From Podarcis muralis (taxonomy: Eukaryota): a DNA stretch of 64,000 bases. Below the pieces are notes generated by a model that saw nothing but the letters and a program-made list of their open reading frames with translations, did no database searches and had not been told where the DNA came from. Shown piece by piece: positions 1 to 55,564 of the stretch; position 1 is the stretch's first letter; each line of letters opens with the position of its first letter. A program made the position numbers and the translations under genes. The stretch spans positions 16,120,001-16,184,000 of the forward strand of contig NC_135656.1 in NCBI RefSeq assembly GCF_964188315.1, given 5' to 3'.

Positions 1-3000
1 ATCTATTGCATAATCTCAGCGGAAAAACATCTACCTGAGCTTCTTGTAATATTAATTTGCCAACACCTGAAAGGAAAGCACAAAAACTGCTGGAAGAATG
101 CATTTAACATTCTGAAACAAGGTTCTCAGGTATGCAACGTGGCTGGGTAACCGCTTAAGCTAGTCTAACTCTTAAACTTAATAAACCAGGTTTGTATTTC
201 CCAAGTAGGCCTATGAAACCTACCTTCGTTTTCAGAATAAGGCTCACAAATCCTTACTGAACTTGTAATGAATTATGTTTGCTAGCCATCGCAGGCCCCA
301 GGTATATATGGAGCTGTGTATGCTCAACATTGAGATTTGGGTGCCTATGTTTTAATTACAGTATTTTGTTTTCTTCTTAATTATTCTATGATTTCAGGTG
401 TTATTGAACTTGTTTGTTATTGGTTCAAGGTTTGAGGTATTAATTAATTAAAGCCAGCCCTTCAGTGTTCCCCATCCAGCAAGGTTGAATTGAAATAAAG
501 TGCATTAGGTTATCAGTACATAAGTGTCTGCCGGGTTTGGTTAATACATTTAAATATAGCCCAGTGGCTTACCCAATTCGGTATGCCTGCATCAGCTATG
601 CCCAATTCGGTATGCCTGCATCAGCTATGAGTCATAACAAAAGATATATGCTTTGTAGACTAGATCAAATACCTTAAAAATTAAAGTATAGTTTTCTCAA
701 GTGCACAAATCTCAGGCAAGTTTTGAAAAAGCAGAGAAGTGACTTTCTGAGTGCTTACCGTATTTCTGAAAAGTATGATAGAGACAAATACATGGCAGGT
801 TCAAGGCACAAGTACATATACTGCCCTCATATGATAAGTGCAGAAAGCATGACAAATATTTTGCCTAAGCAATAGATCATATACAAAGAACCTTTGGCCA
901 GCCAGATGATGAACTACAACTCCCATCCTCCCCTGCCACTGGCCATCCTGGCTAGGGCCAATGGGAGTTGCAGTTCAGCAAAATCTGTAGGGTGTGTCTG
1001 CAGACCTTGCAGAATCCAGCTTTTCTTAGTGCAGAAATTTGATGCTCACAGAGTGAATTTTTATTTTGTGTTTTCTGACCTTGGTTATAAGCTGTTAAAT
1101 ATTTTTATCTTGATTAATACAGTGGTACCTCGGGTTACATACGCTTCAGGTTACAGACTCCGCTAACCCAGAAATAGTACCTCGGGTTAAGAACTTTGCT
1201 TCAGGATGAGAACAGAAATTGTGCTCCGGCGGCGCGGCAGCAGCAGGAGGCCCCATTAGCTAAAGTGGTGCTTCAGGTTAAGAACAGTTTCAGGTTAAGA
1301 ACGGACCTCCGGAACGAATTAAGTACTTAACCCGAGGTACCACTGTATAGAGTTTAAAAACATAAACACAGCTAAAGAATTTATAGACTCAACAAATGAC
1401 ACTCCCTTTTCTGGATTAAAAGAGCAAATACCTCTGAAGAAATCTGCCCAGTTTGCTTATGGTTAGCTAGTAAATATTCTGCACACAAGATTAAAAATTT
1501 GCATCATTACTGCTGACAGAAAAACTGACTCAGGGTTAGGGCTGCTAATATTGATAACACTTCCTGAACACCTGTTTTACAGTTCAGTGCCCAGGAAAGG
1601 TGATGAGCAAGAAACATTTCACAATTACATTAAATATTTAAAAACTTTAATTGTACATTAAAAAATATAAAGAAAGGGTACGAAAACCAAATTAATCATC
1701 ACGACTATCAGAAATTCCTTGTGTACACTAACGGGCAAACCAAACCCAGGTTTACCTTTGTGTAATACACCATCAAATGGCAAAGAAGCTTTTTGAAATA
1801 ACTAATTCTCACTCTTAACAATAGTTTAGTTTAAAGGAAAAGTAGAAGATTTACCTTTCTCCTTTGTGTTTCCCCAGCCAGCTATGTAACATGGGTACAT
1901 GTCAATAGTATCATTTTCAGGTATGCAGACGGGCTGAATATAATTATTATATTTTACATGTTTTATTAGCGTAAACAAGGCAATATCATTTTCATAGCTT
2001 TCTGAATCATAATCAGAATGGACCGTGATTGTACTGACCCGGCGCTTTCGAGTATAATAGTTGTGTGCATGAAGATGATGCACGGCGATGACAGCCCTCC
2101 AAAAGGCTGCGTTCCTAGGACAGAATAAAATCAAAAACAGAGTCAGTAACTATTTTAGAATAGTTACTTCAAGCCTGGTGTAAAACTAGCAAGCATGGAG
2201 CCAGAGTCAAATGGTGAGAGAATGACAAAGGTTTCTGCAATAATAGTAATATAACCAGTAAAAGCATATATGCATAAGAGGAATCCTGCTAGATCAAACC
2301 AAATCATGCCCTATAACAGCCAATCAGATGGTTGCCTGTAGGAAGCTCACAAGCAGAACCTACAGTTGCTGCTCAGCAATTGGTACTCAGGTATAGTGCC
2401 TCTGCATCTAGAAGCAGCATGAGCCATGCTCAGTATGACTATTCACAATTGATAGACATATCCTCCATAAATTTGTCTCATGCACTTTTAAAGTCATCTA
2501 AACTGATGGGCCTCACATTGATCAAAGCAACCTTGAAACATGCCCCAATAATTCCATTTGCACACAACTCCCCCACAATCTTATCATGATGGACTTATCA
2601 ATAAGCACAGCAACTTTATAAGTTGTCTGCCTGTCTCTGCCTCTGGACTGGTCTTATGATAACAATTATCCCTTCTCCAATGTGAATCTCCAGGTCACCG
2701 AGATCTGCAGGCGAGACCTTCCTAGCCAAATTGTCATCTGCTAAGGTCCATCTTGCTTTAAGTATGGGATTTCCCCCCCTGTTGTTCCACTGACCCTATG
2801 GACTCACCACAGCTCTGAAATAAGACAAGCACCAATAGAGATGTGCTCATGGGGCTTGTTGAAAAATGGTTCTCTCAGATCATTTGTATTAGCTAGCTCT
2901 GTTTTTGTTTGGTTTTTTGGGCGCTGCTGTTATTTATTGCTTTAATGTATTGGTCTTAATAACTCTACTGTGAACCATAATGAAATTATCTAAATAGAAA

Positions 3001-6000
3001 ATTGTGTACGTGTGTGTGTGTGTAGAAGCTACAAGTTGGATTCAAGTAACTCGGAGCACTAGAGGAAGCCAGTGCAAAAATGTAAGGATGACGGGAGCTC
3101 CGCCCAGTCTGGAAGTTCAGAAAAATCTCCAGAACAGAATGTGGGAAGAGGATATTGTTCCCTCCAGGGTGCAGAAATACTTGTACTAACAGAACAGTCA
3201 AATCTCTGTGATGTTGAATTCTAACCTATGTATTTAGAATTAAATAAAATCTCCACCCCTGAAAACCAGAGTAAGAATAATGAGGATGACTCCCCACAGA
3301 GTTACAAATACTAAGGTTAGAAGCCGAAGAACTGCAAAAAATAATTATACACCAAGATTTTGGGCATGTGTCAGCTACAAAAGAGTAGCTGATAACCCAT
3401 GCTGCATGACAAGCATATTTTGAAGCTTGAGTGCAGTTGCATCAACACTTTGCGGAATCAGCCTGTATGCCTGCTGCCAAAGTAGGGAAAAAAACACCTG
3501 GGCATACCGTAATTTGGAAATGGGAGGACATTAGTGCCCTCCGTACTTGCGTACCCTAAAATAGATTAGATTGTATTCCGTGCAATGAGTTTCTTGAAAC
3601 ATGAACTTATGCTCGAAACTGTAACCCTACTGTAATAAAGGAGAAGTGCACACAACTGAAATAATCTCATAATTCTTCCCCTGCTTCCATTTCCCTCTTC
3701 ACCTTTCAGACCTGAGAGGCTTCTGATAAGTGCCAAGGGGAGCAGAGGGGAAGAGCACCAGGAGATGAAAAATCTACTTTGTCACACTGTTTTAACTACC
3801 AAACTATATAGTATTAAAAAAGGAAACATCCAGTCATTTACTGCTGTGTTGTTGGGTGGGAAAAGATTTGGGGAGGATGAGAGGAGAAATGTATTCCTGA
3901 AGTCCCAGTGTCTCATTTCCTCTCCCACTCCTCCTTGAAATATGTCCCCACTCCCATGAATTCTCAATATTCACCAAGTGCTTAAAAAAATAAATCAGTA
4001 CACCTTTCTCACACTTTAGAATAGATACATGCCTATTTTTTTTAACGCAGTGTGCTGCTGTCAACACCGTGTTGTTTGTAATTAAACTTCCACCACACAG
4101 ATGGAAATATCCTAGGCCAATGGTATAATGCTGAAGGCTAACTTGCCATGGCCAAGATCCAACCATGGCATCATGTCCACCTATAATCCGAGACTCTGTT
4201 TTTTTCTCATCCATAAGAGGCCTTGTTCCGCAGTCTAGAAATCAAAACACAGATATACTGATGAGATGCCATGAATGTAAATGTTCTGTTAATACAAACC
4301 AATCCATCGACCAAAACAAACTTAAAAGTAGATCTAAAGGATCATTGTTATAAATCGACCAGTTTGCTGTAGCGCTTCTGTCTCTGGACCAATGGGAGAG
4401 TTTATGCAAGACTGCAAACTTTTGAATCACTTACCCCTCTGACACACGTTGTGGATCCCAATCTGGTTTTTGCCACAGAGTGGTTTTGACTCTGTGGTTG
4501 GAGGTGTTAGCACCTTTGTTATGCACCCACCCTCTGGACCTATTTTCTGTGGCTGGTCTTTATATATACCATTTAGAAATGCAAATAATTAAGTGGTATA
4601 ATATAAATGTCTTAAATAAATAATAAAGATAGACACCATTTCTTGGTGAGTTAGGTCTAGCAGTGATGGTTCCCCCCTGTAAAGGTGAGGGGCAGGTTAA
4701 GAAATGTACAGATGATAAGGAATTCTTTAGGGCACTGGTTCCCAAACCTCTCACCCCAGACCACTTGAAAGTTGCTGAAGGTCTTAGTGGACCACTTACG
4801 TTTTCTGCCTGTTGTTGTAAATGTGATGCAATTTGCTAAATGCTGTATGATTTTTAACTGCACTTTCATTGCTTCTTTTCTCATATATTGTACTTCATTG
4901 TATTGTATTACAATTTGTATTCCTTAGAACCCTTTCCAAGTGTCTTCTTCCCATTACTTCTGGTCCACTTCCTGCTCACCTTGTGGCCAGACTGGATCAC
5001 TGGGTTCTAAGAATGATGAAGCAGTCTTTGCACCCATTGTTCACAGACAGTGCTCCTATCATTCATGGTCCATTGGCCACATTCTGGGGTCCCCTGCTGT
5101 ATGGGATTTTCTGATTGGCATGTCTGACACCCCTGTTGAGGTCCTGGTCTCACTGTGGAATGGCAAGGTGTCTAGGGCCATCAAATGCCCACTCCGACAT
5201 TGCGGAGCCCACCAGAATTTTGACACATGCTTCAGATGATGAAACACTATGAACAATGACTGGACTGTGTCGTAATTTTTTATGTTATTACCCAAAGGTC
5301 CTAGGTTGGAAATACACACAATCCAAACCAAAAGTTAAAAATTGAAACTGAAACACTCTAAAACAATATACGGAACTCAGTAACAAATGAAACCATCAGC
5401 AACAATATAATTTCAAAGGTTCCATACCACTACTAAAGGAGAGACTGTTCCAAAGAAGAGCAGCCACTGCAGAGAAAGATGGTCCACAGACCCCTATTCC
5501 ATAAGCCTCAGGGCTTCCCACGTAGATTTTAAAATTCATGCAGGTCACTATGGGAGGAGGCACACTTTCAGATACTTGGAGCCTAGGGCATTCAGGTTAA
5601 CTTTTAAATTTGTACAGCTTAAATTAGGCCTGGAAGACAATAGACAAGCAGTGCAATTGTTTCAGAATCTATGTTAGAGGATACCCTGCGGCATTCAGCT
5701 AGAACTCTGGCATCAGCATTCTGTACCAGTTGCAACTTCCAGGCCATTTTCAAAGGCATGTATTACAATAGCCCTACTAGGAAATAACCAGACTATGAAA
5801 ACCTGTGGCCAACCAGGGCTTCAACAGCAGCACTAACCATGTGAGTCAGAAAATCCCACGAAGCATTCAGGAATCCTTTGGATTCCATAAGTCTTCAGGG
5901 GTGGACCATCTTAACCCCCACCCTTACAGGGGGATCTTGCTGCTACCAGTCCAAAGCACACCAAAAAAGTATTCATCCATGATAAACAATTCACCACAAA

Positions 6001-6798
6001 TCCACAATACCTTCTGTCGCAAAAATCAGATCTGGGGTATGCCCCACAACATGAGTTGAACCTTGATGTACTGAGAAACCCCATGGTTGTCATGGAGGTC
6101 ATGAAATCCTCCGTGGGCCCAGTAAATGCAGCTTCAGCATGGACACTGAAGTCTTCCAACGCAACAGTGAAATGTTCTCCAACATGACCTCTGAGACCAC
6201 CTCAGCTAAAAAGACTGCTGGGCAGCGGGATGGGCAGTACATCAATAGTATCTTATTCTATCTCAAGGGCCCAAATCCAGGAACAAACCCTCTTATCAGT
6301 TACAGAACACACTGGCTTCCTGGTGAGGACAATGGAATTTTCATGGTCAGCAGCATCTCTCCCCTCGCGTCTGACCCTTGGTTCTGAACCAAGTACCCTG
6401 GGGGACAAAGCTAGGATAAATATGGTCTGCTCAGCTAACCCACCTGGGTCTCAGTAATATATGTCACCTTGGGCACCCCCATGGAAAACAGATGACTTAT
6501 TTGAACTGATCTGGCATCAATTAACATCACTACTAGAGCAAAGGGTTTGCCAACATGTTCACCCAAACTCTGAAGATTGGAGGTTAGTCCACAAAGGATG
6601 ATGGTCTTACAGGCATCCCCAAACTCAGCCCTCCAGACGTTTTGGGACTACAATTCCCATCATCCCTGACCACTGGTCCTGTTAGCTAGGGATGATGGGA
6701 GTTATAGTCCCAAAACATCTGGAGGACCGAGTTTGGGGATGCCTGGTCTTAACCATAACTACTGGCCCTTCCAGATTTTCTAAATAATCTTTAAATGC

Positions 6799-6831
<33 letters not shown>

Positions 6832-8058
6832 AATTCTACCCTTCCTTCTGCCCCTCATAACACTCCATGCATCCATTGAAGTGATTTTTAGTCCGTGAAA
6901 GTTTCTGCCACAATAAAGGTGTTTTTTTTAAAAGCTGCCACAAGATCCGTTGTCCTTGCTGCTGGAAGAGACTAACACAGCTACTCTCTGGGACATGGTT
7001 CACAAGAAGCCAATGTTCCATGCTTCAGTAGGGCTTACTCCAAGCTAACGTTGCAGAGGGATGAAGCCTAAAGAATGAATGCCACTCATGAGCTGCCAAA
7101 TCTAGAGCACTATTTTAACTCGGAAGCAAATGCTCCACTGCCTACTTGCGTCACTGTGTCTATTAAGCAATAGCATGCTCCATGGAAGCACTTTAGGAAG
7201 GAGGGGACTTCAATTTCCAAGTAATAATAATTATTTATTATTTATACCCTGCTTTCCCAAATCTGATTGAACTACACACTGAACATTGAAGGTTTATGCC
7301 CCCCAAAACAAATCAGCCTCGAAGGTTGCTGCCTCTTTTTTCTGGCAGACCTTCTACCACCCAGCCAACTTCTTTGTTGCTACTCTTTCTACTCTGCTGT
7401 GAAATCTATTATCTCTGGGTGACACAGATTTCACAAGGTGTTGAACAGGATTTAACATTCCCAGTATGTTCCCAGTATGTTACACATACTGGGAAACAAG
7501 TTGCCATAAATATCCTAGTTTTGACCTTTTTAATAATACAAAAACAAACAAAAACAAACCAACTTGCAGACCTACGGTAACAATCCACTCTGGAGTTCCT
7601 CACATAATAGTTCTGGCCATTTTATACTACAAAAACAGAAGCAGAAACCCAACCTGCAGACCTCACTAGCCACCCTGGAGTTCCTCACGCAATAAAGTTT
7701 ACACGCAAGCACCTTCCTGTGGGGTGGATAACATCATTTGGAATGCTTGAAGTATACACATTTTAACCTTTCCAGTTGTTTTAGATATAATGTATCCCTT
7801 TTAAGAAGAGATGTATCCCTTTTTGGAGAAGGGGGCGACAGAGGACGAGATGGTTGGATAGCGTTTTTGAGGTTACCAGCATGAGTTTGACCAAACTGCG
7901 GGAGGCAGTGGAGGACAGAGGTGCCTGGCGTGCTCTGGTCCAGGGGGTCACGAAGAGTCGGACACGACTAAACGACTAAACAACAACATCCCTTTTAAGG
8001 AGATGGGAGCCCGAGAGGTATTATTTTATGGTTTTTATGATGATGATGTTGGTGATGC

Positions 8059-8111
<53 letters not shown>

Positions 8112-8604
8112 TAAAAACACCACCACCATAATAATATAAAAACACCACCACCACCAACAACAACAACGCCCCTCCGTTTCGAGCCGCCCAGCGACAGCTT
8201 GCTGGAAAGAGAACATTTGTTGGGGTTGGGGATAACAATCACATTTCTCCGGTTCCTGAGGCCGCGATGGGTCTTTCCACGGGGACCCCAATGCCGACGG
8301 CGGATCCACAGGCCTCGCCCGCCCGCTCGATTTGGGAGCAAATCCCAGTCCTCTCAGGGACTTTCCGAGGAAATCCCCGCCCCTCCTTCCTTCGCTGCCT
8401 CCCACGCGCACGCGCAGTTCCACCCCCTGTCTTTTTTGGCGGCTCGAGCGCAGCGCGCGGAGAACGTGGAAAGGGCGGCCGGAGGGAGAGAAAGCCGGGC
8501 TCACCCTCCATGGACAAGAGAGACGTGACGTTTCTGGGCGTGTTGAGCAGCCCCAGGAGCGCCAGCAGAGAGGCCGTGGCTGCCCGGCGGAGCTTTCGGA
8601 ACAT
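1..8604 (-). CDS. TMPRSS12: TMPRSS12-like serine protease, copy A (3'-partial; rest of exon 4 and exon 5 lie off the left edge)
   Basis: Exons: E1 8505-8604 ([20 protein letters not shown]..., signal peptide, donor GTGAGC); E2 4033-4234 (DCGTRPL...ESR|IIGG...LTAAHC, GC donor); E3 1855-2114 (ENDIALF...QPVC...GWG); E4 1-66 partial ([22 protein letters not shown]). Intron phases 1,2,1 join in frame. Motifs DCGTxPL, RIIGG and YNxYIQPxC match TMPRSS12 as recalled; METTL7A-like genes are adjacent. Confidence 0.88.
572..629. repeat. Perfect 29-bp tandem duplication
   Basis: CCCAATTCGGTATGCCTGCATCAGCTATG at 572-600 and 601-629. Confidence 0.9.
1120..1345. mobile_element. Tigger-like (Tc1/mariner) MITE
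   Basis: TIRs CAGTGGTACCTCGGGTTA...TAACCCGAGGTACCACTG with TA target duplication; a near-identical copy lies at 9137-9362. Confidence 0.85.
5860..6420 (-). mobile_element. Degraded L2-type LINE fragment (endonuclease region)
   Basis: Minus-frame remnant [25 protein letters not shown] resembles the L2 APE motif GDFN.H; interrupted frame. Boundaries approximate. Confidence 0.5.
7824..7987 (+). mobile_element. Bov-B (RTE) LINE, 3' fragment
   Basis: Bov-B 3' end ...GAGTCGGACACGACTAAACGACTAAACAACAAC; 9-bp TSD ATCCCTTTT (7815-7823 / 7988-7996). Confidence 0.85.
8059..8112. repeat. (AAT)n microsatellite; similar tracts near 6800, 14522, 44467, 44567, 49450, 55517
   Basis: Directly visible trinucleotide runs. 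Confidence 0.9.
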
Positions 8605-8930
8605 TGTCCGTCGGCGAAACAAAATGGCGGCCGGGCGCCCCCCCCCCGCTCCCTTGGCGGGAATAACGTTGCGGCGGCGGCGGCGCGAGGGAGGGAAGTG
8701 GAGCGAAGATGGCGCGGAGTTCCTTCGCTCGTTCTGACAGAACCTTTTGCTGCTTTCCCCCCGCACAAACACCGAACACATACACACACGTCTCGCAGGG
8801 TTCTGGTTCTCGAGGGGAGATCATTAAAGGAGCCGAGGCGGTTCTCTCAAGAAAGAACGGGGTTGGAGGTAACCGGATTACGGTTCCTCAAGAGGCTGAC
8901 CCGAGACATACCTGTTAACATAGGTTAAGG
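8180..8930. promoter_or_regulatory. CpG-island promoter / exon 1 of copy A
   Basis: GC- and CpG-dense block around the ATG; YY1-type AAAATGGCGGC at 8621-8631. Boundaries approximate. Confidence 0.7.
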
Positions 8931-8939
8931 CCTTAGGAG

Positions 8940-11708: not shown

Positions 11709-20170
<8,462 letters not shown>

Positions 20171-20723
20171 CGTCCGTCGAGGAAACTTTCTCCTCCGGCC
20201 GAAGTGACGTTAGCGCGGGGGAGGGGAAGGTGGGGGGGGGGGGCGAAGCGCGCAGCGGGAGCTTCCGCGCCTTCTTTACGCCCGTCGGTTGGATCGCTTG
20301 CTCCTCGGGGCGGGAGTCTCCTGTCGGGGATCGATAAGGGAATCCCGAGAGCCGGCAACGAGGGAGGATGGGGACGACCTCTCCCCAAGCCGTACGAAAG
20401 CGAAACTTCCTATTATTATTTCTTTTATTCTTCCTATTATTATTTCCTTCCCGACGTAAGGAAAGCAAAAAACCGCCTGGTGAAATGTCACAGCGACGGC
20501 AGCTCATAAGCCCGTTACAAAAAATCGTATTTTACGAAAGTAATCGGGGCTAAGAGAGGCAACGGGAGGGGGCATAGGTTCTTTTAGCAGTTAAAGGGAT
20601 TTTGATAAATAAGGATCGATATGCCTAATAATAATGATGATGATGATTTTATTATTTATACCCCGCCCATCTGGCAGGGTTTCCCCAGCCACTCTGGGCA
20701 GCTTACAGTACATAAAAAATTGT

Positions 20724-27533: not shown

Positions 27534-27587
<54 letters not shown>

Positions 27588-30500
27588 GTATTTTTCGCCC
27601 TATAGGACGCACTTTCCCCCCTCCAAAAATGAAGGGGAAATGTGTGTGCATCCTATGGGGCGAATGCAGGCTTTCGCTGAAGCCTGGTAAGCGAGAGGCG
27701 TCGGTGCGCACCGACCCCTCTCGGTCTCCAGGCTTCAGGAAGCTGTCCGCAAGCCTTGCGCGCCCGGTGGGAGTTCCCGCCGGGCTCGCAAGGCTTGCGG
27801 GCAGCAGGCTGAAACCCGAAGCACAGGGCGCGCTTTGGAGCTCGCCCCGTGCAGATGTCCGCAAGCCTTGCGCGCCCGGCAGGAGTTCCTGCCGGGCGCA
27901 CAAGGCTTGTGGATAGCAGCTTGTTCTGGGGTCGGGGGAAGGGGAATATTTATTTATCCCCCCCCCCAAAAAAAAAACACACACAAAAAACCACCGAGGT
28001 GCGTCCTATGGGCCAGTGCGCCCTATAGGGTGAAAAATACGGTGTGTGTGTGTATATATATATATATAGGTTTTATATTCTGATTTTGTTCTGTGAACCG
28101 CCCTGAGATCTTCAGGTATAGGGCGGTATATGAAGCCAGTAAATAAAAAATAAAAGGAAATATTTACCATTCTCTTTTGTCAATCCCCATCCACTTATAT
28201 AACATGGGTTCCTGTCACTCAGGAGAAGAGGGGTGCTAGGTAAACAGATGGGCTGAATATAGTCATTGTATGTGATAACCTGGCTTAATTTAAACAAGGC
28301 AATATCATTTACGTGACTTCTTGCATCATAACGACAGTGGGGCATGATTTTCATCACCTGGCTGTTTACAGAATGAATCTTGTCTCCATAAAGTCGACGC
28401 AAGCCAAACACAGCCCTCCAAAGCTGTGGTGTTGTCCTAGGACAAAATGAAAGCCCTTGCAGAGTCAATCATTAAGCTAGGATTGCAACTTCAGAGCAAT
28501 GAATTTTGTGTCTTGCTTCACCATCTGTTCAAAAATAAACATGAAGCTAGACTCATCAAACACCAAAAGAATGAAAGAGATTGCTGCAGATAATAAAAGC
28601 AACATATCCAGCAAATCGTTTAGATTCCAAACAGATATACAGATAGGTAATACTAGCCAGAGCAAGCTCAAAACATGCTCAACAAGAGTTTCAATTCACT
28701 TCAACTAACTTGGAATTGAGCAAAACTAGGCTTTATTTCACCCAGGTCAAAGACAGAGTTTGGCACCCCCCCCCCATGCTGGGAGCTTCAGTGGCACCCC
28801 TCTGGGGGCTAGCCCCTCCGTAGCTATGGCATTGCTTGGAATGCCACAATGACAATTGTGTCTGTAAATAGAGCATTGTTATTTCCTTTTTTTAAAAAAA
28901 ATGATATTTATTAGAAGTTTAATAGTTACAAAAAAAGAAAGACAATAAAAAGAGCAATGTTATTTCCTTTCCTATCTGTGCCTTTTTTGCAGGGAGTTGA
29001 TTTTATGATGCTCATTATCCCAGGGGGGAATTACATTCAGAAATTTGCTGGAGTGGACTGGGGGACATTCAGTGAATAGGATGGATCCTCCCTCTGGAAC
29101 AGATAGGCAAAGCATTTCAAGTCTTTTGCCTCTTCCAGGATTAGGAGCCATTCTACCCTCCAGTTCTGCCCTGCCTCTGGTCAGGTTGGCAGATTCCTTT
29201 TTTCTATGGGTAAAGGAGGGGGGTCCTTATTCTATATACCACTGTCTTTGTGGTTTCTCTTTTGCTTCGTTTTTGCCTCTTCCATGTGTTTGAGAGGGTT
29301 TTCTCCAACAGATATCCATAATATAGCTATAACACTACAAATCACCTGGCCTTGCAAAAAGCTGAAATAAGATAAAGAGCCACATGTATGGATACACATA
29401 CAAAAAACATTCAGTAAGTCCATATACATGTACTTATATTTGATCCATATACTTTTCTCACACCAGACACAGAAAAAAGATTGAATATATAAAGATCTGA
29501 ATATATACCTGTTTTGAATGCAGTGTGCTGCTGTTAGCACGGAGTCATAATCAATTAAAGATCCAGCACATACATGAAGGTATCTTCCATTAGTATGGTG
29601 AACTTGAAGACTAACTTGCCAAGGCCATCTTCCAACTTCAGCGTCATGTCCACCTACAATCCGTTCTTCCTCTGTGGTCTCATCTACAAGTGGCCTGGTT
29701 CCACATTCTAAATATCAAAATTTATATTGGTGAGATGCAATCCAGCAATTGGTTTGCATCTTTCCATTTATGCAAGGACTTGTGTTTGTGCACTAGTACA
29801 TTCCTTGAATTGTTGGGGAAACCCAGAACACCTGACGGAGACATTATGCAAACCTGAAACATTCAGTGTGGGGGAAAATAACCCTGGTTATACTGTATTG
29901 TTGGGTTGCAAACCAAAGCCAGCCTCTGCAATAACACTGATTTTAACCTATGTTAACAGAAGACTACATTATACGACTATTGTAAGATGCTCTCTTTTTT
30001 TACCCCAACAGGGCACCTAAACCTGCAAGAAGATGGGTAAAAATCACATGTTCTAAATTGAGTAAGATCCTAGTTCCAAGGAAAGATCCAGAGTTCATGA
30101 TTTTCCTCTCCCCCTTTCTGAGGGTGGATGGACAAGGGGCATCAAGAAATCTAAGACTGTTCCTGTTTTGTATGTGGGCATCTCATTCTTTCTCTCGAAG
30201 GTGCTCTCCATAAAAGGATCTAGCCTTGTTTCCAGTCAATTAGGTGAAAAAAAGGTAAAGGTAAAGGACCCCTGGACAGATAAGTCCAACCAAAAGCAAC
30301 TATGGGGTGCAGTGCTCATCTGGCTTTCAGGCCGAGGGAGCCAGTGTTTGTCCACAGCCAGCTTTCCAGTTCGTGTGACCAGCATGACTAAACTGCTTTT
30401 GGTGCAATGGGACACCGTGACGGAAACCAAAGCACACGGAAATGCTGTTTACCTTCCGCTGCAGCAGTACCTATTTATCTACTTGCACTGGCGTGCTTCC

Positions 30501-31130
30501 AAACTCCTAGGTTGGCAGGAGCTGGGACAGAGCAACGGGAGCTCACCTCGTCACATGGATTTGAACTGCTGACCTTCTGATCAGCAAGCCCAAGAGGCTT
30601 AGACCACAGCACCACCTGTGTCCCTCCAGTCAATAGTCCCATAGTCGAAGGACTCCATCGTTGCCTTTGACTGGACTTAACCGTCTAGGGGCCCTTTAAC
30701 TTTACCTTCCAGTCAATTAATTCAAGGATTGGCTCTAAATAATTATTTCCCCACCCCACCCCTAAAACACTGCAGATAATTTTGCTTGCTCCAATAGGAT
30801 AGAAACCGAATCCCCTTATTTTTGGGATGGCGGCCAAGGGTCTCATTGTGCAGCCCTCACCCCCAGCCTCCTTCCTTATGGGCTGTTCTCACTGGAGGGG
30901 AAGCCCCTGACACCGGAGGCCACTAGCAGCCTCCCTCCAGCCCCAGCCTCGAAGGGCGTGCCTGACACGTGAGAACCTGACACGTGAGAATGTGCCCGCG
31001 GGTTCCGCCAAGGGAAGCCGGGCTCACTCTCTAGAGAGATCCCGGCCGAGGGGTTCTCGCCAGTAGCCTCGCCCAGCAGCAGCAGGAGCAGCGCCAGCCA
31101 GCCAGCAGCCGGCCCACTAAAACGCCGCAT
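22483..31130 (-). CDS. TMPRSS12: TMPRSS12-like serine protease, copy C (complete, 317 aa)
   Basis: Exons E1 31028-31130, E2 29509-29707, E3 28168-28436, E4 23934-24076, E5 22483-22722; total 954 bp, in frame, GT-AG. EEER|[31 protein letters not shown]; hydrophobic tail. Confidence 0.92.
22933..23283 (+). mobile_element. Sauria-type SINE
   Basis: 12-bp TSD TACCAACAGGTA (22921-22932 / 23284-23295). Confidence 0.82.
25243..26945. mobile_element. Tc2-like non-autonomous TIR element carrying hairpin minisatellites
   Basis: 27-bp TIRs CCGTATTTTTCGCACCATAGG(G/A)CGCAC with one mismatch; TA TSD (25241-25242 / 26946-26947). Confidence 0.85.
25492..26530. repeat. 102-bp GC-rich minisatellite, 10 full copies plus a partial copy
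   Basis: Unit starts at 25492, 25594, 25696 ... 26410, 26512; units are nearly identical. Confidence 0.95.
27586..28042. mobile_element. Second Tc2-like MITE with internal hairpins
   Basis: Termini (A)CGTATTTTTCGCCCTATAG / CTATAGGGTGAAAAATACGG; flanked by (TA)n(CA)n on the left and (TG)n(TA)n on the right. Confidence 0.8.
30250..30706 (+). mobile_element. Sauria-type SINE (30250-30624) followed by an inverted 5' SINE fragment (about 30638-30706)
   Basis: Family sequence; target TCCAGTCAAT occurs three times (30231, 30625, 30708). Confidence 0.78.
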
Positions 31131-31420
31131 CGTCTGTCAAGGACACAAAATGGCGGGCTGCGAGTCTTCTCCCGCTTTCCCCCCCGCGCTTCCCTGCTGA
31201 GCGTCACGTGACGGCCGCGCTACGTTTTTCCGACGGCGGCCTTCGCTCCCAGGCGGCGGGTATCCCCAACTCGTTCCTCTGCAAAATGGGTCTCCCCTCC
31301 CGGCGGCGGAGGTGGCGGGAGCCGGTGGAAGCGCCTTGCTGGAGGGAGGGAAGGCGATTTCCATTCATTTCCCTGCTCCCGGCCTTCGGGGTCACCTCGC
31401 ATGCTGTACTGGAGGACGGA
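30870..31420. promoter_or_regulatory. CpG-island promoter / exon 1 of copy C
   Basis: CpG-dense; AAAATGGCGG at 31147-31156; palindrome CGTCACGTGACG at 31202-31213. Confidence 0.7.
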
Positions 31421-33220: not shown

Positions 33221-36200
33221 TTAGAAAATGAGGCGGAAAGTTACCCATCCAGCAGTTGAAAAGATCAGGACAAACTGAATGCTCACAGTGGTGGTTTTGT
33301 TGTTAGATACATGTGAATCAATCCAACTTCTGTAATTTGCTGCACGGATATAGATTCCCGGTAATTGTGGTCGGCCACAACCAACACCACTGCTGGTGAT
33401 TCCTACCAGATAATACTTGTCATCTAGGAAAGAACACATCAGAGGACCACCACTGTCTCCCTGGAGGATAAAAAAAATAAAGAAGATAACTTGAGTGCTG
33501 CTGAAGGTATTCTGGAGATGTAGCGTGCATAGAAATTATGATAGTAGGGGCTGTATCTAATGCTGGAGCTTTACGGGTGCAATAGGCTTCCATGCACACA
33601 GTGGAACTTCCTCTCCCTTCCCTGTGCACCCTCAGAAACAGTTCTGGAGGGTTGAAAAACCAAACCACTTTTGGGCATTGCAGGGGAGGAGAGGAAGTGG
33701 AAGTCCTGTTTGTGAGTGGAACTCTACTCACACAGCACTGGATAGAATTCAGTAAGTCTGAGCTATGCCTTCCATGTTATTGTAAGCCTCCCAGAGAGCT
33801 TTGGCATTGTTGAGCGACAGATTAAATGCTATTAATAAGTAACTATAAACAATAGTTATCAAAAGAAAAATACAGATTGCTAGAGAAGATGGATGTGGGA
33901 AAGCTGGACTTTGTGGAACAGCACTAAACATAACTATGTCACTTACAAAAAATTGGTAATGCCTATTCTGGGAATTCCAGCTATAAGCTCAGTAAGCCTG
34001 ATGAGAAATTTAGTCTACGCATTGAAGCGCATGGCGCGCCATCCAGTCTTTGCTCTCGTAACTAGGCATTATGTACACAGGTGTTGAGAAGAACATTCCT
34101 CACCCTCTATTTTGAATGCAAATAATGTGGTCCAAGTGTTTGAATGGAAGAAAATAAACACACTCTGACTATTCTATAAAGTTCCTCCGCTTTTATCCCT
34201 TACCCCACCTCTTAGCAGTCTTTACTGAGGTAAACAAGTTATTAAAAATCATGGTGAAGGCTTTTCTACTTCAGCTGGAAGTATGCCCAGATTTGCACAT
34301 TCCTTGAAATCTGTATTAGAAATCTAGTTCCACTAGGGCTGCCATATGAAAAATCGTGATTCTTTTTGTGTTTTTGTCACACACAAAAAGCTCAACAAAA
34401 CAACTTTGGGGTTTGTCTTTTAAAAAGCGCAACAATTTCTGGGTTTTCCTTTTAAAAAGCTCATTTTGGGGTGGGTCTTCCTAAAAAAGCCTCAACAACT
34501 TTAAGGGTGTCCTCGCTTTTATTTTTTGAAATATGGCAACCCTAGTTCCACCCTTTCTCCAATTCTCCTTTTGTCTTTTCAAGTGTATACTTGCAAGGGG
34601 GAACTTTTTATTATTTTTGTTCAGTGTGTAAGGGATACTTATGCACTATTGTAAATAATAAATGTTTTAGCACATAAATATGAACAAATTTTTATGTTTC
34701 TGGAACTGACTGACTATGGTGTTACACTGACATATAATTGTGTTACTACCAGGTAGTAAAGTTTGACTTAGCAACCACATGGCTGGAGGTTTCGCCAATA
34801 TGTTTTTCAAATGGAATTTTACCTGGCAGCTATCGACACTCCCGTTTTCAGTACCAGCACAAAGCATATTCACTGATACTCCCCCAGCATACCAATCAAA
34901 TTTGTTACAGATTTGCTGTGGAATAATGTTGACTCGAGCTTCTTGTAATATACGTACAGCTTTGCCTATAATGAAAACACAAGACAAAAATGGAAGTATG
35001 CTAATTTGTTGTTTAATAATCTGCAATGTACAGGACAACAGGGATATTAGTAGCTCTTGGGTCAGTACATCTTTCTTAAGCCTGCTGCACCAGACCCCCA
35101 TTCTCCATGCATAATCTACATTAGTTGCTAAACTAAGGTTCAAGAGTTATGGCGTGTACTTTTAAGAAACTAATGCAGAACTCAATTCTCTTTCATTTTT
35201 CCGGTAGTGCAATTGTTTAATGAGTGTGGCTATGTGTAAATATAGTACATTGAATTTAGATCCCACCACTGAGAGTAGTAGTGTCTACTGTGCAATAAAA
35301 TGTCATTATGGCTTGGCAAACAGATGTAAATTTAGTAGATTCAGTGCCACATTATTTGCTTTGTAAACTGAACTGCTATACATATTATAAAGATTTTATT
35401 ACGGCTATCACTATACTATGCATGGTAGTTCAAACAGTTTACAAATTAGCCAGGTTTACAAATTAGCCAGGTTAGTCTGGTGCACAATATGAGAATTATG
35501 ATGTTTGCACAGGTTTGGTCAGAGCAAAAGCCAGAGTAATTGAGTATCTGAATAACTGGCATTTTTTTTTTTTTGTAGAATAGACCAGCATCTACTCCTC
35601 CTTCCCACAAAAATGACTCATTATATATTGAGACATGAGTTCTATCATGTATTGTGCCTTTATCCTCAGATTCCACTTAGAAATACTAGAAGAAACAAGT
35701 TACAGTTAGGTAGCCATGTTGGTCTGCCGTAGTCGAAACAAAATAAAAAAAATCCTTCCAGTAGCACCTTAGAGACCAACTAAGTTTGTTATCGGTATGA
35801 GCTTTCGTCTGCATCTTAAGAAGTGTGCATGCACACGAAAGCTCATACCAATAACAAACTTAGTTTCTAAGGTGCTACTGGAAGGAATTTTTTTGTTTTG
35901 TTTAGAAGAAGCAACACAGCCTGATGGAGGAATTTCCTACAGATGTGCAAGACCAAACCTGTACATACCCATCTCAGGAGCTTTGACCAGGCATCTTGAA
36001 TCTACTACCCAAAATACACAAAGCAGGAAACCATAGGGAACTGTTTCAGGCATTAGTACCTGCACAGTTGGGGGTGCCTGGATATATAGACTCAATGCCA
36101 CCAGCAGAGTAATCCTTAATCCTACACGCATTTGACTTGTGCAATTTCAAGCATATGCAGTTGAAGGTGGGCTGGTTGAAGTTGTGCAGGTTAAGTACCA

Positions 36201-39200
36201 AGCAAGGCAGAGAGCTTAGTCGTTTTGTGCTGGGTCTGCTTGGGGTTACCCAGCATAAAAATAGCTTTAAAGCTCTCTGCCTTGCTTGTTGGTTAAGGCC
36301 CGTTCAGCATGCTGGCTGTGAGATGCTCTCATGAGATCTTGCAGGGCAAAATAAACACCACTATCCTTTCAGAGCCAGTGCATTGAGCAGAATTTACCAC
36401 CCACTACCCCTGCCCCAGCAAGGCAGAGCGCTTAAAAGCTATTTTTTGCTGCAGGTCCATTTGGGTTACATGGTACAAAAAGGTTTTAAGCTCTTCACCT
36501 TGCAAGGTTAAGTCCCACTCAGCATGATGGCTTGGTTTGTTGGAGTGGCTCCAATGGTTTGAATATACCTGTTAAGATGTGGCACTACTATACAAATTAC
36601 ATATGGGATACTACTAACTCAGATGAAACTACTGTCCATTGACAATGTCCCCAAAACCACCATGCCAGCTACTATGGATGCTGCAACTCTTTACACCAAC
36701 AGCTCCCACAAAGATGGACTGCAAGCCATCAGAAGCACCCCCCATGGGGCTACAGAACATCTAGCCACCAAGCCCTGCTACTATGCACTTTCTCACAAAT
36801 ACTTCAGCTTTGGAGAGAACATTCATTGTCAGATCATCTGATCGCAAAGCTCCATAAGACGCAAACATCTCCATAGCTGACTTACAACATTCCTTCCTCA
36901 GGTCCTGTCCCTCAAAGTCTCTCTTCTACCTGAGGACACACCAGAGTGTGTAAGTGGTAGCTAGAAGCACTTAAGTATGTGCAGCAGTTAGTGAGTTTCC
37001 AATTGAAGGTGATGCTTATATTTCTATTATACAGTTGCACAGTAGTGTCCAGACAGTTAACCTATTGTATGCAGTGGTCCAGGTTAATGTTGGAGTGAAA
37101 GTTACTGAAGTCCTGGTGGAACTGCTCAAGAGTCTCCTGCCCAAGAATCCAAATGATAATGTACATCAGTGTATCTCAGACATTCACTTAATGTTGCAAA
37201 TGGGCCACTGGCAATAAACAGCCTCGGCCCTGTACACCCGAAGGAGCATCTCCACTTCCATTATTCAGCCCAGACACTGAGATCTATCTCCGAGGGCCTT
37301 CTAGAGCTTCTGTCACTGAGAAGTTACAGGGAACCAGGCAGAGGGCCTTCTTAGTAGGGACATCCACCCTGTGGAACGCCCTCCCATCAGATGTCAAAGA
37401 GATTAACAACTACAAAACTTTCCAAAGACATCTGAAAGCAGCCCTGTATCAGGAGGTTTTTAATGTTTTGCTTTGTTTTTATTATGTCAGAAGCTGCCCA
37501 GGGCAACCCAGTCAGATGGGTGAGGTATGTATGTACAAACAAACAATTAAAATTTATTATTATTTCCCTGGAAATGGCAAATCTGGATTAAATGAGGAAA
37601 ATACAAGCTGCCATTGGGATAATGACATCATGAGGAATCTACAAAATACTTGCAGACATGAAGAACACTGATCCTGCAATAACAGCAATCTGGAAGGTAA
37701 AGGAAAAGCTTTTGGGGAAATCCGAAAGTGTTCTAAATCAGCCAGGAAAAGGTTGCCATACTGTGGAGCTATGTATGTGCTCATGGCAGTGCCACTGATC
37801 TGAAGATCCATGTTCTCCCCATGTGTGAAATAAGTTCAACTGCTTCAATGGGACTTACTTTCCAGCTAAGTATGCAGCTGGAGATAACTTAATTCTCACT
37901 AGTAACAAAAGTTTAAAGGAAAAATAAAAGATTTACCATGTTCATATGTGCTTCCCCATCCACTTATGTAACACGAGGTCTCATGAGACAGGAGAGGAGG
38001 AGTGTCAGGTAAGCAGATGGGCTGAATATAGTCATTGTACTTGACAGGCTTGGCAAGTTGAAACAAGGCAACATCATTTTCAAAGGTGCCCCATTCAAAG
38101 TCAGAATGGATTGTGATAGTGCTGACCTTCTGTATTACAGTACGAGAGTGGGGTTTATACAGATGATGCAAGCCAATCACTGCCCTCCAAGATTCTGGAC
38201 TCCTAGGACAGAATAAAATCCCTTCTAGAGTAAATAATTAGTGCAGAAGTTCCCATTTCAGACTTTAAAATTTGAGAGCAACAGCAAAACAGGGTCAACA
38301 CACATGCAATCATTCCCCTTCAGGAACTCTACTCAAACCATGAACTTCGAATCTTGTCATGGCTCACTCTTCATAAAAGCTAGCCTAGGAGTTTTGCTAT
38401 CTCTGTGATTTAAATAGTATATTAGTTTTATGGAACTTTATTCGGAAATTCTATTCAGAATCAAAAATAAAGTTAAGTGGGGGGAAAACAAGAAAATAGG
38501 AGGTAATGGAAAGATTGTCCATCGATGCAAAAGAACTGCACAGATAATTTTGCATTTGACACTAGAACTTTTGAGTAGAAACTATTCCAGAGCACTTTTG
38601 AATGGGAAGAGCTGCATAAGCAGTTTATGCATCAGTTTATACACCTGTTGCTCAAAGTAAACAATCCCTTTGGACATGTCATAGCGAATCATGGAAGCCA
38701 TACAGAAAGAAAAGATAAGTGTCATTTGTAATCTACAATGGTACGAGTTTCATGATACGAGGCTGTTTTAAAACCTGAACCTATGGTGAAAATCCTTTTG
38801 CTGATAAATCCTACTGGAACTTCTAGGTCAGCGCTTTTCAAACTTTTCAAGTTGCTGGCACACTTTTTGGACAAGCATCATTTCACGACACAGTAATTCA
38901 GTTTTACTAGCACACTGGAGGTTAAACTAACCCGTTCCAGCCCCTACTTAAGCCCAGTCAAAGGCAACTATGGGGTTGTGGAGCTCATCTTGCTTCAGGC
39001 CGAGAGAACTAGCGTTTGTCCAGACTGCTTTCTGAGTCATTTGGCCAGCATGACTAAACTGCTACTGGCACACAGATGACCATAATGAGTGCCAGAGCAC
39101 ATAAACGCTTTTTACCTTCCAGACGCAGCAGTACCTATTTATCTACTTGCACTGGCATGCTTTTGAACTGCTAGGTTGGCAGAAGGCGGGACAGAGTAAC

Positions 39201-42200
39201 AGGTGCTCACTGTGCCGTGTGGATTTGAACTGCCAACTTTCCAATCAGGAAGCCCAAGAGGCTCAGTGGTTTAGACCACAGCGCCACCGGCTCCACTATC
39301 TGTAGAAATGAGCCAGTCAATGAAAGCTTATGCCGGTAACACTTGTGAAGTCTTTAAGGTGCCTCAATGCTTCCTGTTTCTCCTGCAAGAGGCTTACATG
39401 GCTGCTCTCCTGCAAAGCCTACTGATGATACATCCAAAAAAAGTTCATTGGGGTGTGTGTGTGACCTATTCATATAACTGGTTGACGTGCAAAGTGCACC
39501 ACTGATGGGCTCTGATCTGCATGTACTTTTCATTTTGCTGGTTCTCCGGCCCCTGCAATTCCGTTGCTCTTGGTCACCAAAGTATGTTGGTGATACAGAT
39601 ATTGTTTTTGTGTTGCATACCACTTAGGTTTTTAGAATATTAAGCAATTTCGAAATGCTTTTAAATAAAGAGAAAGTGCCCTTCGTAGCATCCCCATTCT
39701 CAGCTGTTACACGTTACCTTAGCATGCATGGCTGAGGGTTAAAATGGCACATTTATGTTGAAAAATTCCAATAACTATCTACTTGCGCTGGTGTGCTTTC
39801 AAACTGCTAGGTTGGCTGGGACAGAGCGATGGGACCTCACCCCGTCATGCAGATTCGAACCACTGCGGATTCGAACCACCGCCCTTCCGATCGGCAAGCC
39901 CAAGAGGCTCAGTGGTTTAGACTACTGTGCCACCCGCTTCCCTGCAACACACCTACACACTGCAGCCAGCACACTAATTTGTCGCAGCACAGAGTTTGGA
40001 AAGCTCTCTTCTAGGTACTGAATCCTAAATGAGCCTAGCTGTGATCGAAAAGCAATTAAGTATCCAACTATGAGGTTAACAGTGGCTTATTAAGATGGGC
40101 TAGATTCTGATCTGGAGGCCAATGTGGGGTGGGGGAGGTAGGCCAAAGGAGGGCAATTTGTTTAGGTGGCGGCAGCTGCTTCATGTGGTGTAGAGCTGCT
40201 ACAATCAGTAGCCAAATAAGCCATATTTCCCAATACTGCAGTTGAAACACCACTACAAGATCATAACAGAATGTCATTCCTGTCAGGGCATTTTGGAGCG
40301 TCACGGTGACCCACAAAACAACCAAAGACAGCAGCTATGCTCTGCTTGAAGTAGTAGGAGAAAATTGTTTTTAGTAAGGCACCACTCCCCCAAAACTGTT
40401 CAACTTTCTCCCAGAAATGAAAATGCCTTCCTGCTTTGAATGTTATTTAAAGGACTGACACTGGCTTCTGATGTCACAGAAGCATACAGACTGCACCTAG
40501 ACAGCCTTTCTGTGATTCTGCTGTGTCGCAGTTCTGTGAAAATGGCACATATCGAAAATTTAGCCTATACCCTCACAGTATGATACTATTCCTATATGGG
40601 CTGACACAGCAATTCATTATTTTTTCTCTAGAACTTGGGCAATTGAGGGCCCATCTGTGTGGAAGAGAATTGGTGCCACTCAAAAAAAAAAAAGCGGATT
40701 ATTTCTGCATATTCGGGGACTTCCTAGATCTGCAGTATTTAAGTTAAATGAAAAAAATATATTTACAAACACAAAGACAAAGAAGCAAAAGCCTGACATG
40801 AATCTGAATTTTTGGGCCTAACAGAATCTTAACATCATAGCTGAGAAGGAAAAGAAAAAAGAAAACCTGAGGTGGGGAAAAGAAGGAATTGGCATGCTCA
40901 AGACCAAATGGGTTTGGGCAAGCTTCAAGTGACGCTAAATGATTTCTGCCTTCACTGTGCATTCAAATACCAATGATGGAAATGTGTAGGTATGTCGTGA
41001 TAATTATAGGATCAGAGTGCTATAGATAGTGTGAGTTTAGAAATCTGATCTATCGTTGAGGCTAATTCAGCTGTCGAATGGTGAAGATGTCAATTCAGAG
41101 GGCAAGATGGCCTGCTTAAGCCCCTAACATTTAATAGTATACTGTAAGTGATCATTAGAGTTGGCAGATAGGCACCATGAGCTACAAACAAACAAACAAA
41201 CAAACAAACAAACAAACACTCCTTTCCTGTGCTGCTCTCCCCACCCAGTTTTCTTACCCTTCACCATAAAGTCCCAGAGTGGGTAACAACATAATCATAT
41301 AATTAAAAACATGTAAATGTGTAAAAATAACTATAGTAAAGTGGCATTCCAGTCCATCTTGCAGATGATTCTCCTGGAGTGTGGATATATCATTTTTGGG
41401 GACTCAGAGTTTGAGGTACACCTCTCCACTTCTTTTGTACCTATTTTGAGTATTATTAGCATAATTATATTACTTTAATAAGACTGCATTATTATACAAT
41501 ACTATATGAGCTATTAAGGAAACAACCAAAACTTAAGTACATAACTGTTATGTAGATGTTATGGTTCATGAAATAAGTGCTTCAGGAGGATGGCTGGTGG
41601 CTATTTTGGAAAGAAGGTTTCCATGGACATATGCCAGCCTGCAGGTTCTATCTACCCAACTTTTTTTTTTTTTTTTGACAAGCTATGTATTCTATAGCAA
41701 CCACATGGAAATTGTCATCAGTAAAGACTGCCCTACAGAAGTATTGCACGGATTGGATTAAATTAAGTGTTCAGATTTATGTCTGGCAACCAGCCCTGAA
41801 CTTGAAAACCACAGTATTATATGGCATAATGGGGAAAGGTTTCAGAATGGTAGGAAAAACTGAAATCTTCCCCTCTTCCTTTTCTCCCTCCTCTTTCCCC
41901 TGAGCCATGGCCAACGCTATAGGGCTCCTGCTCTGGTATGGTTCAATTAGGCTAGTTGAAGACACATGAACCAAAACACCCCTGTTAAGGGTTGGCAATA
42001 AACAGTACTAAAAAATTTTTCCAGATCCCCCCTTGTGGGTAGAGACCAATACATGTCCCTCAAGCACAAAACTGACAGAAAAAGATTCAGAACAAAAAAT
42101 AATAATACATACATATTTACTTTAATGCAGTGTGCTGCTGTCAGCACTGAGTTGCTATTAATTAAAGATCCACCACATATATGGTAAAAAGATTCTCGAG

Positions 42201-43994
42201 GAGCAGGTTGAGCTTGTAGACTAACTTGCCATGGCCAAGCCCCAAGCTGAGCATCATGTCCACCTATAATCCGAGATCCTTCTGCTGTCTCATCCACAAG
42301 AGGCCTTCTTCCGCATTCTAAAAATAAAAAAGTTGTACTGGTATTTCAGTGTAAAACACAGCAGGCATTCAGCAACAATACAATATAGCCATTGTTTCAA
42401 CCGTCCAATCTGACACAGCAGTTCTGTTATCAGATTGCTTTCTGTTGGAGATTATGCAAGTATGAAGGCTTCTGTGAACCATTAAATAATCTTATTGTCA
42501 GATGCCGGCCTAAAAGAACACACCAACTTGTTTGATTGAGGTTAACAGAGTGCATGCCTCCAGGATGGTGGCCAAACATATAACAGAAGCCAAAACATAA
42601 GAGGTCAATGTGACTGGGACCAGAGTAGCATACAAATTTCATTCACATTCACCCACCCAGTAATTTAAATGCATCCCCTTCTCTCCTTCCTCTTCCCTCC
42701 CCGGATGCATTCAAGCTTAGAGAAAAAGTTAGAGTCACACAAATGGAGTGTGTGTGTGTGTGTGTGTGTGTGTGTACACACACATACAATTTTGTTAAAA
42801 TTATATCCTGCTCTTCCTTACAAAGGAGTTTTATTTCCTAAGCTGAATTGCTGCTCAGACTCCTGGCAATGTTTTTTTTTGGGGGGGGGGCAGAGGTGAT
42901 TAACCTTTCCCTCCCAACTGCTCCTCACAGCAATTTAGCTTCAGGAAAAGGTTCCAGTTGTTGTGTATGGGACCTTTTTCTCTAAATGGGGTGGGGGTGG
43001 CAGCACATGGGAAAGAGAGGATTGTTAAGTTTTCCCACCTCAGCTGCCACTGTTCCCTGAAAATTTCACCCAGAAGGCAATTCAAGTTAAGGGAAAGGCT
43101 CCATTTGCACAAATGTTTCTTCCTCTTCCTTTTTACTACAAAAGGCACACGTTTATGAACAGAAACAAAGGAGTACAAAACATTACAATTTTTAAGAGAT
43201 ATTATGGAAGGTATTGTTATAGAAAAATTTGGGGTTGGCTTTTGCAGCCCAACTCTCCATCAAGGGATTCAGTGTCCCTTAAGACAGTTATCGGTCACAG
43301 AAGAATGGATGGAGGCAGGAACCAGTCAAAGCAAGGCAGATCTTTATTTTCCTGTTGCACCACCAGAGTCCTCCCTCCCTTGCAAGGAGGTGAGAAGGGC
43401 CCACAACACCAGTGTATAACAGCTTTTGAAGACTTAGAAATTACCCAACCCCTTATTCAAAGACCACCCGTTTGACAGGAGCAGAAGGGAGGGAAAAGGG
43501 TAGAGTCTACGCTGCCTTCTTTGCCTAACATTAGATCCACGTGCTTCGACCTCCAGGAAAAACAGCAGCCAGGCAGAGCGGCAAACCGAGGGCCGCTTAA
43601 CTTGAGAAGAGATCCCAGTAATCGGGAGAGTAGAAGGAAAAGCCGTCCGGGAAGAAACAGCTGAGGATTCCACCACGCCAGGAGGCATCCCTCCACGTGC
43701 TCGACTCTCCTTGGCATGCCCCTTACGCACTCTGCGTCCGTCGCACTGGAGGCTGCCGGGAGTCGTAGTTCGCATAGTTCGGAGGGGTACTCCGCGCGCA
43801 GGCGCACTTCCGCCCAAGGCCCTGAGGGAACCTGCCCTGCCCAAGCGCCCGCTGCCGCACCCACGGGAACCAGGGGGGACGCCGGGCTCACCGTGTGCGG
43901 GGACCTTGGAGGGCAGAGCTCCGGGCAGGGGTCCGTACAGCAGCGCGAGGAGCGCCAGCGAGGGCCCGGCTGCGGGGCGAAGGCTCCGCCGCAT
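33221..43994 (-). CDS. TMPRSS12: TMPRSS12-like serine protease, copy D (complete, 318 aa)
   Basis: Exons E1 43892-43994, E2 42113-42317, E3 37937-38202, E4 34823-34965, E5 33221-33460; total 957 bp, in frame, GT-AG. EGSR|IIGG, TAAHC, NDVAL, VDSCQ-GDSGGP; hydrophobic tail. Confidence 0.92.
35736..35903. mobile_element. Penelope-like element terminal inverted repeat (fold-back)
   Basis: Arms CCTTCCAGTAGCACCTTAGA...GGTATGAGCTTTCGT and ACGAAAGCTCATACC...TCTAAGGTGCTACTGGAAGG are reverse complements, about 70 bp each. Confidence 0.65.
36623..36945 (+). mobile_element. Penelope-like reverse transcriptase fragment
   Basis: Remnant [22 protein letters not shown] resembles PLE RT (LYTNIPH.DGLQA); degenerate. 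Confidence 0.65.
37690..37811 (-). mobile_element. Penelope-like reverse transcriptase fragment
   Basis: [25 protein letters not shown] resembles PLE RT motif GTAMG..MAP.YANIFM..LE. Confidence 0.65.
38948..39290 (+). mobile_element. Sauria-type SINE (a second, 5'-truncated copy lies at about 39775-39942)
   Basis: Family body and tail; approximate ends. Confidence 0.7.

Positions 43995-55515: not shown

Positions 55516-55564
<49 letters not shown>

Follow-up and report, generated by a model that had tools for sequence, protein, structure and literature searches.

We analyzed a window of 64,000 nucleotides (nt) from Podarcis muralis (assembly GCF_964188315.1, contig NC_135656.1, positions 16,120,001 to 16,184,000), which carries a tandem array of genes related to the membrane-bound serine protease TMPRSS12. 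The window very probably holds four (D, C, B, and A, in the direction of transcription) of six tandem co-oriented TMPRSS12 paralogues that were duplicated early in squamates and have been kept since. An initial annotation of the window had described a lineage-specific TMPRSS12-like family, paired as A/B and C/D and possibly extending further to the left. The TMPRSS12 family and the extra leftward copies proved correct, whereas the lineage specificity and the pairing did not.

Four genes of a six-gene array

A tblastn search of the window with the exon peptides of gene D revealed exactly four co-linear homologous exon sets and nothing further, all on the minus strand, and the splice junctions were read to build gene models. 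A, B, C, and D each have five coding exons (E1 to E5) with intron phases 1/2/1/0, which bears out the earlier description of four co-oriented genes with identical exon phases. Three models are complete: (i) gene D (33221..43994, 318 amino acids (aa)), with E1 43994-43892, E2 42317-42113, E3 38202-37937, E4 34965-34823, and E5 33460-33221; (ii) gene C (22483..31130, 317 aa), with E1 31130-31028, E2 29707-29509, E3 28436-28168, E4 24076-23934, and E5 22722-22483; and (iii) gene B (11709..20170, 319 aa), with E1 20170-20071, E2 16344-16143, E3 13383-13115, E4 12588-12446, and E5 11954-11709. Gene A (1..8604) is represented by its 5' part, with E1 8604-8505, E2 4234-4033, E3 2114-1855, and E4 66-1, the last being truncated at the window edge. 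The first exon measures 100 bp in A and B and 103 bp in C and D, and the fifth exon measures 246 bp in B and 240 bp in C and D, which reproduces the exon sizes given in the initial annotation.

The second intron of A is a GC-AG intron, its GC donor (4031..4032, minus strand) being supported by sequence conservation and a gap-free protein alignment. No in-phase GT is present at the homologous donor position; E2 ends at 4033 and is followed by GC instead (AG/GCATGT). P. raffonei and Lacerta agilis share exactly this donor, which the RefSeq models also adopt. An alternative GT at 4015, 18 nt downstream, would place a 6-aa insert after His57 and was rejected because the GT is missing in Lacerta, the GC at the homologous site is conserved, and the alignment with the RefSeq proteins is free of gaps.

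Identity with P. muralis RefSeq proteins confirms the models independently. Gene C is 100% identical to XP_028576922.2 (P0176) over 317/317 aa and gene D to XP_077780064.1 (P0173) over 318/318 aa, both named "transmembrane protease serine 12-like [Podarcis muralis]". Both remaining genes fall within the "transmembrane protease serine 9-like" protein XP_077776233.1 (P0166, 687 aa): its residues 1-319 are 100% identical to B over 319/319 aa, and its residues 409-583 are 100% identical to residues 35-209 of A. The open reading frames (ORFs) of B, C, and D are intact and complete, as had been claimed. Gene A is intact as far as the window reaches, including His57 and Asp102, and its P. raffonei orthologue (313 aa) is intact throughout. 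In P. raffonei, none of the four ORFs is interrupted; in Lacerta agilis, the same holds for A and D and for the parts E3-E5 of B and E2-E5 of C, and P. lilfordi has annotated full-length orthologues. The genes of the array are thus confirmed as real and intact.

The complete array is seen in P. raffonei (CM049751.1), where, read along the direction of transcription, two METTL7-like genes come first, followed by D-C-B-A-F-E and then by an opposite-strand gene with pKID and bZIP domains (ATF1/CREB family). The encoded proteases have 318 (D), 316 (C), 319 (B), 313 (A, P0167), 317 (F), and 324 (E) aa. P. muralis also has F and E; therefore, two further copies lie to the left of base 1, where the initial annotation had anticipated more. 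METTL7-like genes flank D in the window, in P. raffonei, and in Lacerta, and the pKID+bZIP gene flanks E. The human gene order is presumably ATF1-TMPRSS12-METTL7A. DIP2B and SCN8A have been used as wider anchors of the TMPRSS12 locus (PMC13762310).

Family membership and age of the duplications

A word search with exon 3 of B identified 54 relatives. Those bearing gene names, from squamates, birds, and turtles, were all TMPRSS12, TMPRSS12-like, or "TMPSC protease", and the remaining matches were labelled "hypothetical" or "Peptidase S1 domain-containing" or had no name. Among the top 120 matches to one relative, P0006, the gene names were likewise of the TMPRSS12 type, except for two "elastase-1-like" labels; these matches comprised several distinct TMPRSS12-like proteins per squamate species, many of them on one chromosome-scale contig, and one protein each in five geckos, most birds, turtles, and alligator. 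The TMPRSS12-like identity proposed earlier is borne out by the names of the matches and by the placement in the tree described below.

Mouse Tmprss12, a type I membrane protease, processes ADAM3, and sperm require it for motility and migration; chicken TMPRSS12 can cleave an avian metapneumovirus glycoprotein (PMC7401031). TMPRSS12 is testis-biased or testis-dominant in 21 vertebrates, and acrosin is reported to be its ancient paralogue (PMC13762310). The lizard genes resemble mouse, human, and chicken TMPRSS12 in encoding a peptidase S1 with a full triad, an N-terminal signal peptide and, at the C-terminus, a putative membrane anchor (type I in TMPRSS12, PMC7401031), in being sister to sauropsid TMPRSS12 in the tree and, probably, in lying beside METTL7-like and ATF1-family genes. 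They differ in that (i) there are six tandem paralogues, whereas the retrieved birds, turtles, alligator, and geckos have one gene; (ii) the lizard copies are only 42-50% identical to chicken TMPRSS12; and (iii) paralogue F lacks the activation Arg, Asp189, and Gly216. The best-scoring solved structure was that of acrosin, a trypsin-like protease of sperm (1FIW, E = 1.2e-58; also 1FIZ). Acrosin, however, is a soluble acrosomal enzyme encoded at another locus, has no C-terminal hydrophobic anchor, and is absent from the present tree.

The phylogeny was reconstructed as a maximum-likelihood (ML) tree of 75 proteins, and a quick tree of 114 rows agreed with it. In the ML tree, the squamate copies form one clade (100/100) beside a clade of bird, turtle, and alligator TMPRSS12 (100/100). 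Orthologue clades were obtained for A (100/99), C (100/99), D (97/96), F (100/98), and E (99/96). Clades A, C, D, and F each mix lacertoids, with Podarcis in all four, and toxicoferans, with both iguanians and snakes in all four; clades A, C, and D also contain Lacerta, Zootoca, Rhineura, or Salvator, as well as anguimorphs. Clade E, which unites the Podarcis gene adjoining the ATF1-like gene with gecko and some skink genes, has lacertoid and toxicoferan members and looks like the ancestral-type copy. Gene D groups with F (97/90) and A with D and F (96/88), and skinks possess an additional clade of their own. Members of the orthologue groups are present in Anolis sagrei.

Orthologues of A, C, D, E, and F are thus present in both Lacertoidea and Toxicofera, and therefore the duplications precede the lacertoid-toxicoferan split. 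This split occurred well over 150 million years ago. Judged from these sequences, the array arose in early squamate evolution, being neither specific to Podarcis nor inherited from the amniote ancestor. The family is consequently not limited to this lizard lineage, contrary to the initial annotation. The suggested A/B and C/D pairs were recovered neither in the identities nor in the trees; constraining C and D to group together costs 11 log-likelihood units, a difference at which the constraint is not rejected by the approximately unbiased (AU) test (p = 0.126).

Predicted activity, selective constraint, and possible role

All exons tested score as Pfam Trypsin. B, C, and D carry His57 (AAHC), Asp102 (ND[IV]ALF), Ser195 (GDSGGP), Asp189, Gly216, and Gly226, and the triad that A shows in part within the window is complete in full-length A of P. 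raffonei. The divided specificities and the sperm-surface or epithelial setting envisaged in the initial annotation are conjectural, and the trypsin-like S1 pocket is the same in every in-window copy. Gene C has Leu at position 192 instead of Gln, and Leu is also found in Lacerta C. All copies begin with a hydrophobic signal, have a CG(T/R)RP propeptide and an activation site of the form Arg-I(I/V)GG, and finish with a hydrophobic tail; hydropathy peaks in B, C, and D are confined to residues ~4-25 and the last ~20 residues. The tail ends the protein in the lizard copies, leaving zero cytoplasmic residues, and in the alignment their type I layout, which differs from that of the type II transmembrane serine proteases, matches that of chicken and gecko TMPRSS12. 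Testisin (PRSS21) and prostasin (PRSS8) are glycosylphosphatidylinositol (GPI)-anchored S1 proteases with a signal peptide, a single trypsin domain, and a C-terminal hydrophobic tail. The lizard tail without cytoplasmic residues may also fit a GPI signal, although testisin and prostasin belong to another S1 subfamily and locus. Pairwise identity among the in-window copies is 48-58%, in agreement with their earlier description as strongly diverged.

From these features, we predict that each product is a secretory-pathway zymogen with a signal peptide and a short propeptide, the Cys of which probably tethers by a disulphide. Cleavage after Arg15 and before I(I/V)GG would create a new N-terminus that, as elsewhere among S1 proteases, forms the oxyanion hole, and the Asp189/Gly216/Gly226 pocket should cut after Arg or Lys. 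The C-terminal hydrophobic tail may hold the protein on the membrane, either as a type I anchor or via a GPI signal. The copies would differ mainly in surface loops and hence in substrates. The proteins are expected to be active and, by homology with mouse TMPRSS12, to act on sperm or in the reproductive tract, the likely setting being the sperm surface.

Comparison of the exons in the window with P. raffonei revealed 98-100% identity, except for exon 1 of C. This signal-peptide exon (31028-31130) is 88% identical and contains a 3-nt indel, and the other C exons are 98-99.5% identical. B is 99.4% identical to its P. raffonei counterpart, P0068. The nonsynonymous-to-synonymous rate ratio (omega) between P. 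muralis and Lacerta is 1.42 for A, 0.31 for B, 0.66 for C, and 1.14 for D, and the corresponding pN/pS values between P. muralis and P. raffonei are 0.88, 0.09, 0.56, and 0.92. Only B departs from neutrality (p = 0.028, with small counts), which points to purifying selection.

Clades A, B-like, C, D, and E show almost no variation at residues R15, H57, D102, D189, S195, G216, and G226. Clade F, by comparison, has lost the activation Arg in 7/10 sequences, Ser195 in 4/10, Asp189 in 6/10, and Gly216 in 10/10. The F protein of P. raffonei (317 aa, L002:1696-8995) has Gln in place of the activation Arg, IVGD in place of IVGG, Asn189, and Ser216, and in the F orthologues of iguanians and snakes His57 or Ser195 is also lost in part. 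F looks like a pseudo-protease lineage kept across squamates. On the strength of these residue patterns, we read A, C, and D as probably active enzymes whose surfaces change fast, and F as a putative dead enzyme that has long been kept.

Several observations weigh against the reading of an old array maintained as working proteases. The tree was built without a mammalian, amphibian, or acrosin outgroup, so that its root is assumed, and B was not resolved into an orthologue group in the ML tree. The omega values of A, C, and D are indistinguishable from neutrality, and on that basis alone relaxed constraint is possible. RNA reads were checked in three bulk runs and one single-cell run of the same species, all of unknown tissue, over positions 28000-33999, which cover E1-E3 of C and E5 of D. 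The C exons had zero depth in all four runs, whereas two runs covered E5 and the 3' untranslated region of D at a depth of about 0.4-1.5, in the orientation fitting a minus-strand RNA; no splice joints were recovered in the four runs over this interval. The RNA data neither support nor refute expression of several copies.

The reproductive role of the array is one that we infer only by homology, and it is possible, if rather unlikely, that the extra copies took non-reproductive roles in epithelia, glands, or immunity and that the array is not a sperm protease system. The trace reads at the 3' end of D come from runs of unknown tissue, and the cleavage of a viral glycoprotein by chicken TMPRSS12 (PMC7401031) indicates that the family can act outside sperm. 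On the other hand, TMPRSS12 is testis-dominant in the vertebrates surveyed (PMC13762310), the high omega of A and D may reflect a pattern common in reproductive proteins, and A, C, and D have upstream elements in common.

For a role in reproduction, we tentatively propose a wider scheme that we consider conceivable rather than probable. In most lizards and snakes, an ancient six-gene TMPRSS12 set may act jointly on sperm or in the female tract, with B and E as a conserved core, with A, C, and D evolving fast via sperm competition or sexual conflict, and with F as a dead partner or decoy. If so, the six-gene set would be a reproductive protease system without counterpart in the retrieved birds, turtles, and alligator. 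An old, stable six-copy array in most squamates would amount to a natural experiment, in which near-neutral copies keep their catalytic residues alongside a conserved dead-enzyme lineage, and it could show how sperm proteases diversify under internal fertilization, sperm storage, and sperm competition.

The initial annotation had called this candidate system undescribed. RefSeq already lists these genes and gives two of them a misleading name, but no description of a squamate TMPRSS12 array was found in the literature searched, nor were the six old orthologue groups, the rate differences among copies, or the dead-enzyme lineage found there. The nearest published statement is that several species have multiple TMPRSS12 copies that originated by whole-genome or local duplication (PMC13762310).

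Another alternative is that only B and, outside the window, E are working genes and that A, C, and D drift under relaxed constraint, being open by chance. The omega and pN/pS values of these three genes, none of the omega values differing from 1, and the zero RNA depth on the C exons examined would fit this explanation. However, the ORFs are open and the splice sites correct in three genomes, with full-length orthologues annotated in a fourth, P. lilfordi; the orthologues of A, C, and D across Lacertoidea and Toxicofera have nearly invariant key catalytic residues; and clade F shows what real decay of such sites looks like within the same family. We therefore regard uniform relaxation of A, C, and D as improbable and as a weaker alternative to active enzymes with fast-changing surfaces.

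It is highly improbable that the pairs B+A, D+C, and F+E are each a single "TMPRSS9-like" polyprotease gene with two domains, which is what some RefSeq models imply. Such models exist for B+A (P0166), for F+E (P0186/P0191, 671-672 aa, "TMPRSS9-like"), and, in an older version, for D+C (P0180, 636 aa). The linker between B and A in P0166 is the translation of intron 1 of A, and this linker peptide is also found among the listed ORFs of the window; therefore, P0166 is a fused model of two neighboring genes and not a polyprotease. Moreover, each unit starts at an ATG of its own, encodes a separate signal peptide and C-terminal anchor, and is closed by a stop codon, and the units are annotated separately in P. 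raffonei, P. lilfordi, and newer P. muralis records. TMPRSS9 (polyserase-1) has several protease domains in one gene behind a type II N-terminal anchor, whereas the single lizard units have a signal peptide, and neither an LDLa domain nor an N-terminal anchor was seen in those scanned. The likeness is confined to the presence of two trypsin domains within a single predicted product (P0166, P0186). For annotation, this means that RefSeq merges adjacent copies into false "TMPRSS9-like" proteins and that single-orthologue pipelines would choose an arbitrary squamate copy.

The least credible alternative, that each of the four genes is the orthologue of a different old PRSS gene common to all amniotes, can draw on the low identity among the copies, but it is practically dismissed by the gene tree, which places all squamate copies in one clade (100/100), distinct from the single clade of bird, turtle, and alligator TMPRSS12, by the TMPRSS12 or TMPRSS12-like names of every named relative, and by the adjacency of the copies at one locus.

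Neighboring genes and noncoding features

Three tandem two-exon METTL7/TMT1-like methyltransferase genes (Pfam Methyltransf_11) adjoin D on the minus strand, at 47035-48819, 53209-56756, and 58143-61716. In the third copy, 1 bp is deleted from a C-run of exon 1 at ~61360, and the resulting frameshift marks either a pseudogene or a homopolymer assembly error. In Lacerta agilis, a second A-like gene (L004:26800-32631; P0165, 313 aa, 90% identical to Podarcis A) lies directly downstream of A. Either a recent additional duplication or a duplicate introduced by the assembly accounts for it; the gap between A and F in P. raffonei has no room for such a gene.

The regions upstream of the four ATGs, all read on the minus strand, are GC-rich and TATA-less, and an ACGT-core element is kept in each of them. 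A putative YY1-like element, GCCGCCATTTT, is common to A, C, and D at -24/-25. In the upstream region of A (8605..8765), GCCGCCATTTT is found at -24 of the ATG. The upstream region of C (31131..31290) contains GCCATTTT at -24 and CGTCACGTGACG at about -80, and that of D (43995..44155) contains GCCATTTT at -25 and CGTCACGTGACG at about -94, CGTCACGTGACG being common to these two genes. The upstream region of B spans 20171-20330.

Nearly all RNA reads in the checked interval fell on an interspersed repeat at 30200-30800, in intron 1 of C, and originated from many loci. Reads on this repeat continue into unlike sequence with tRNA-like ends (GGGATTCGAACC), and the repeat is probably a tRNA-derived short interspersed element. 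Intron 3 of C contains a 102-bp tandem repeat at 25483-26526, with 10.2 copies that are 98% alike, and next to it an 89-bp repeat at 26540-26754, and it is because of these tandem repeats that long spurious ORFs appear on both strands of this intron.

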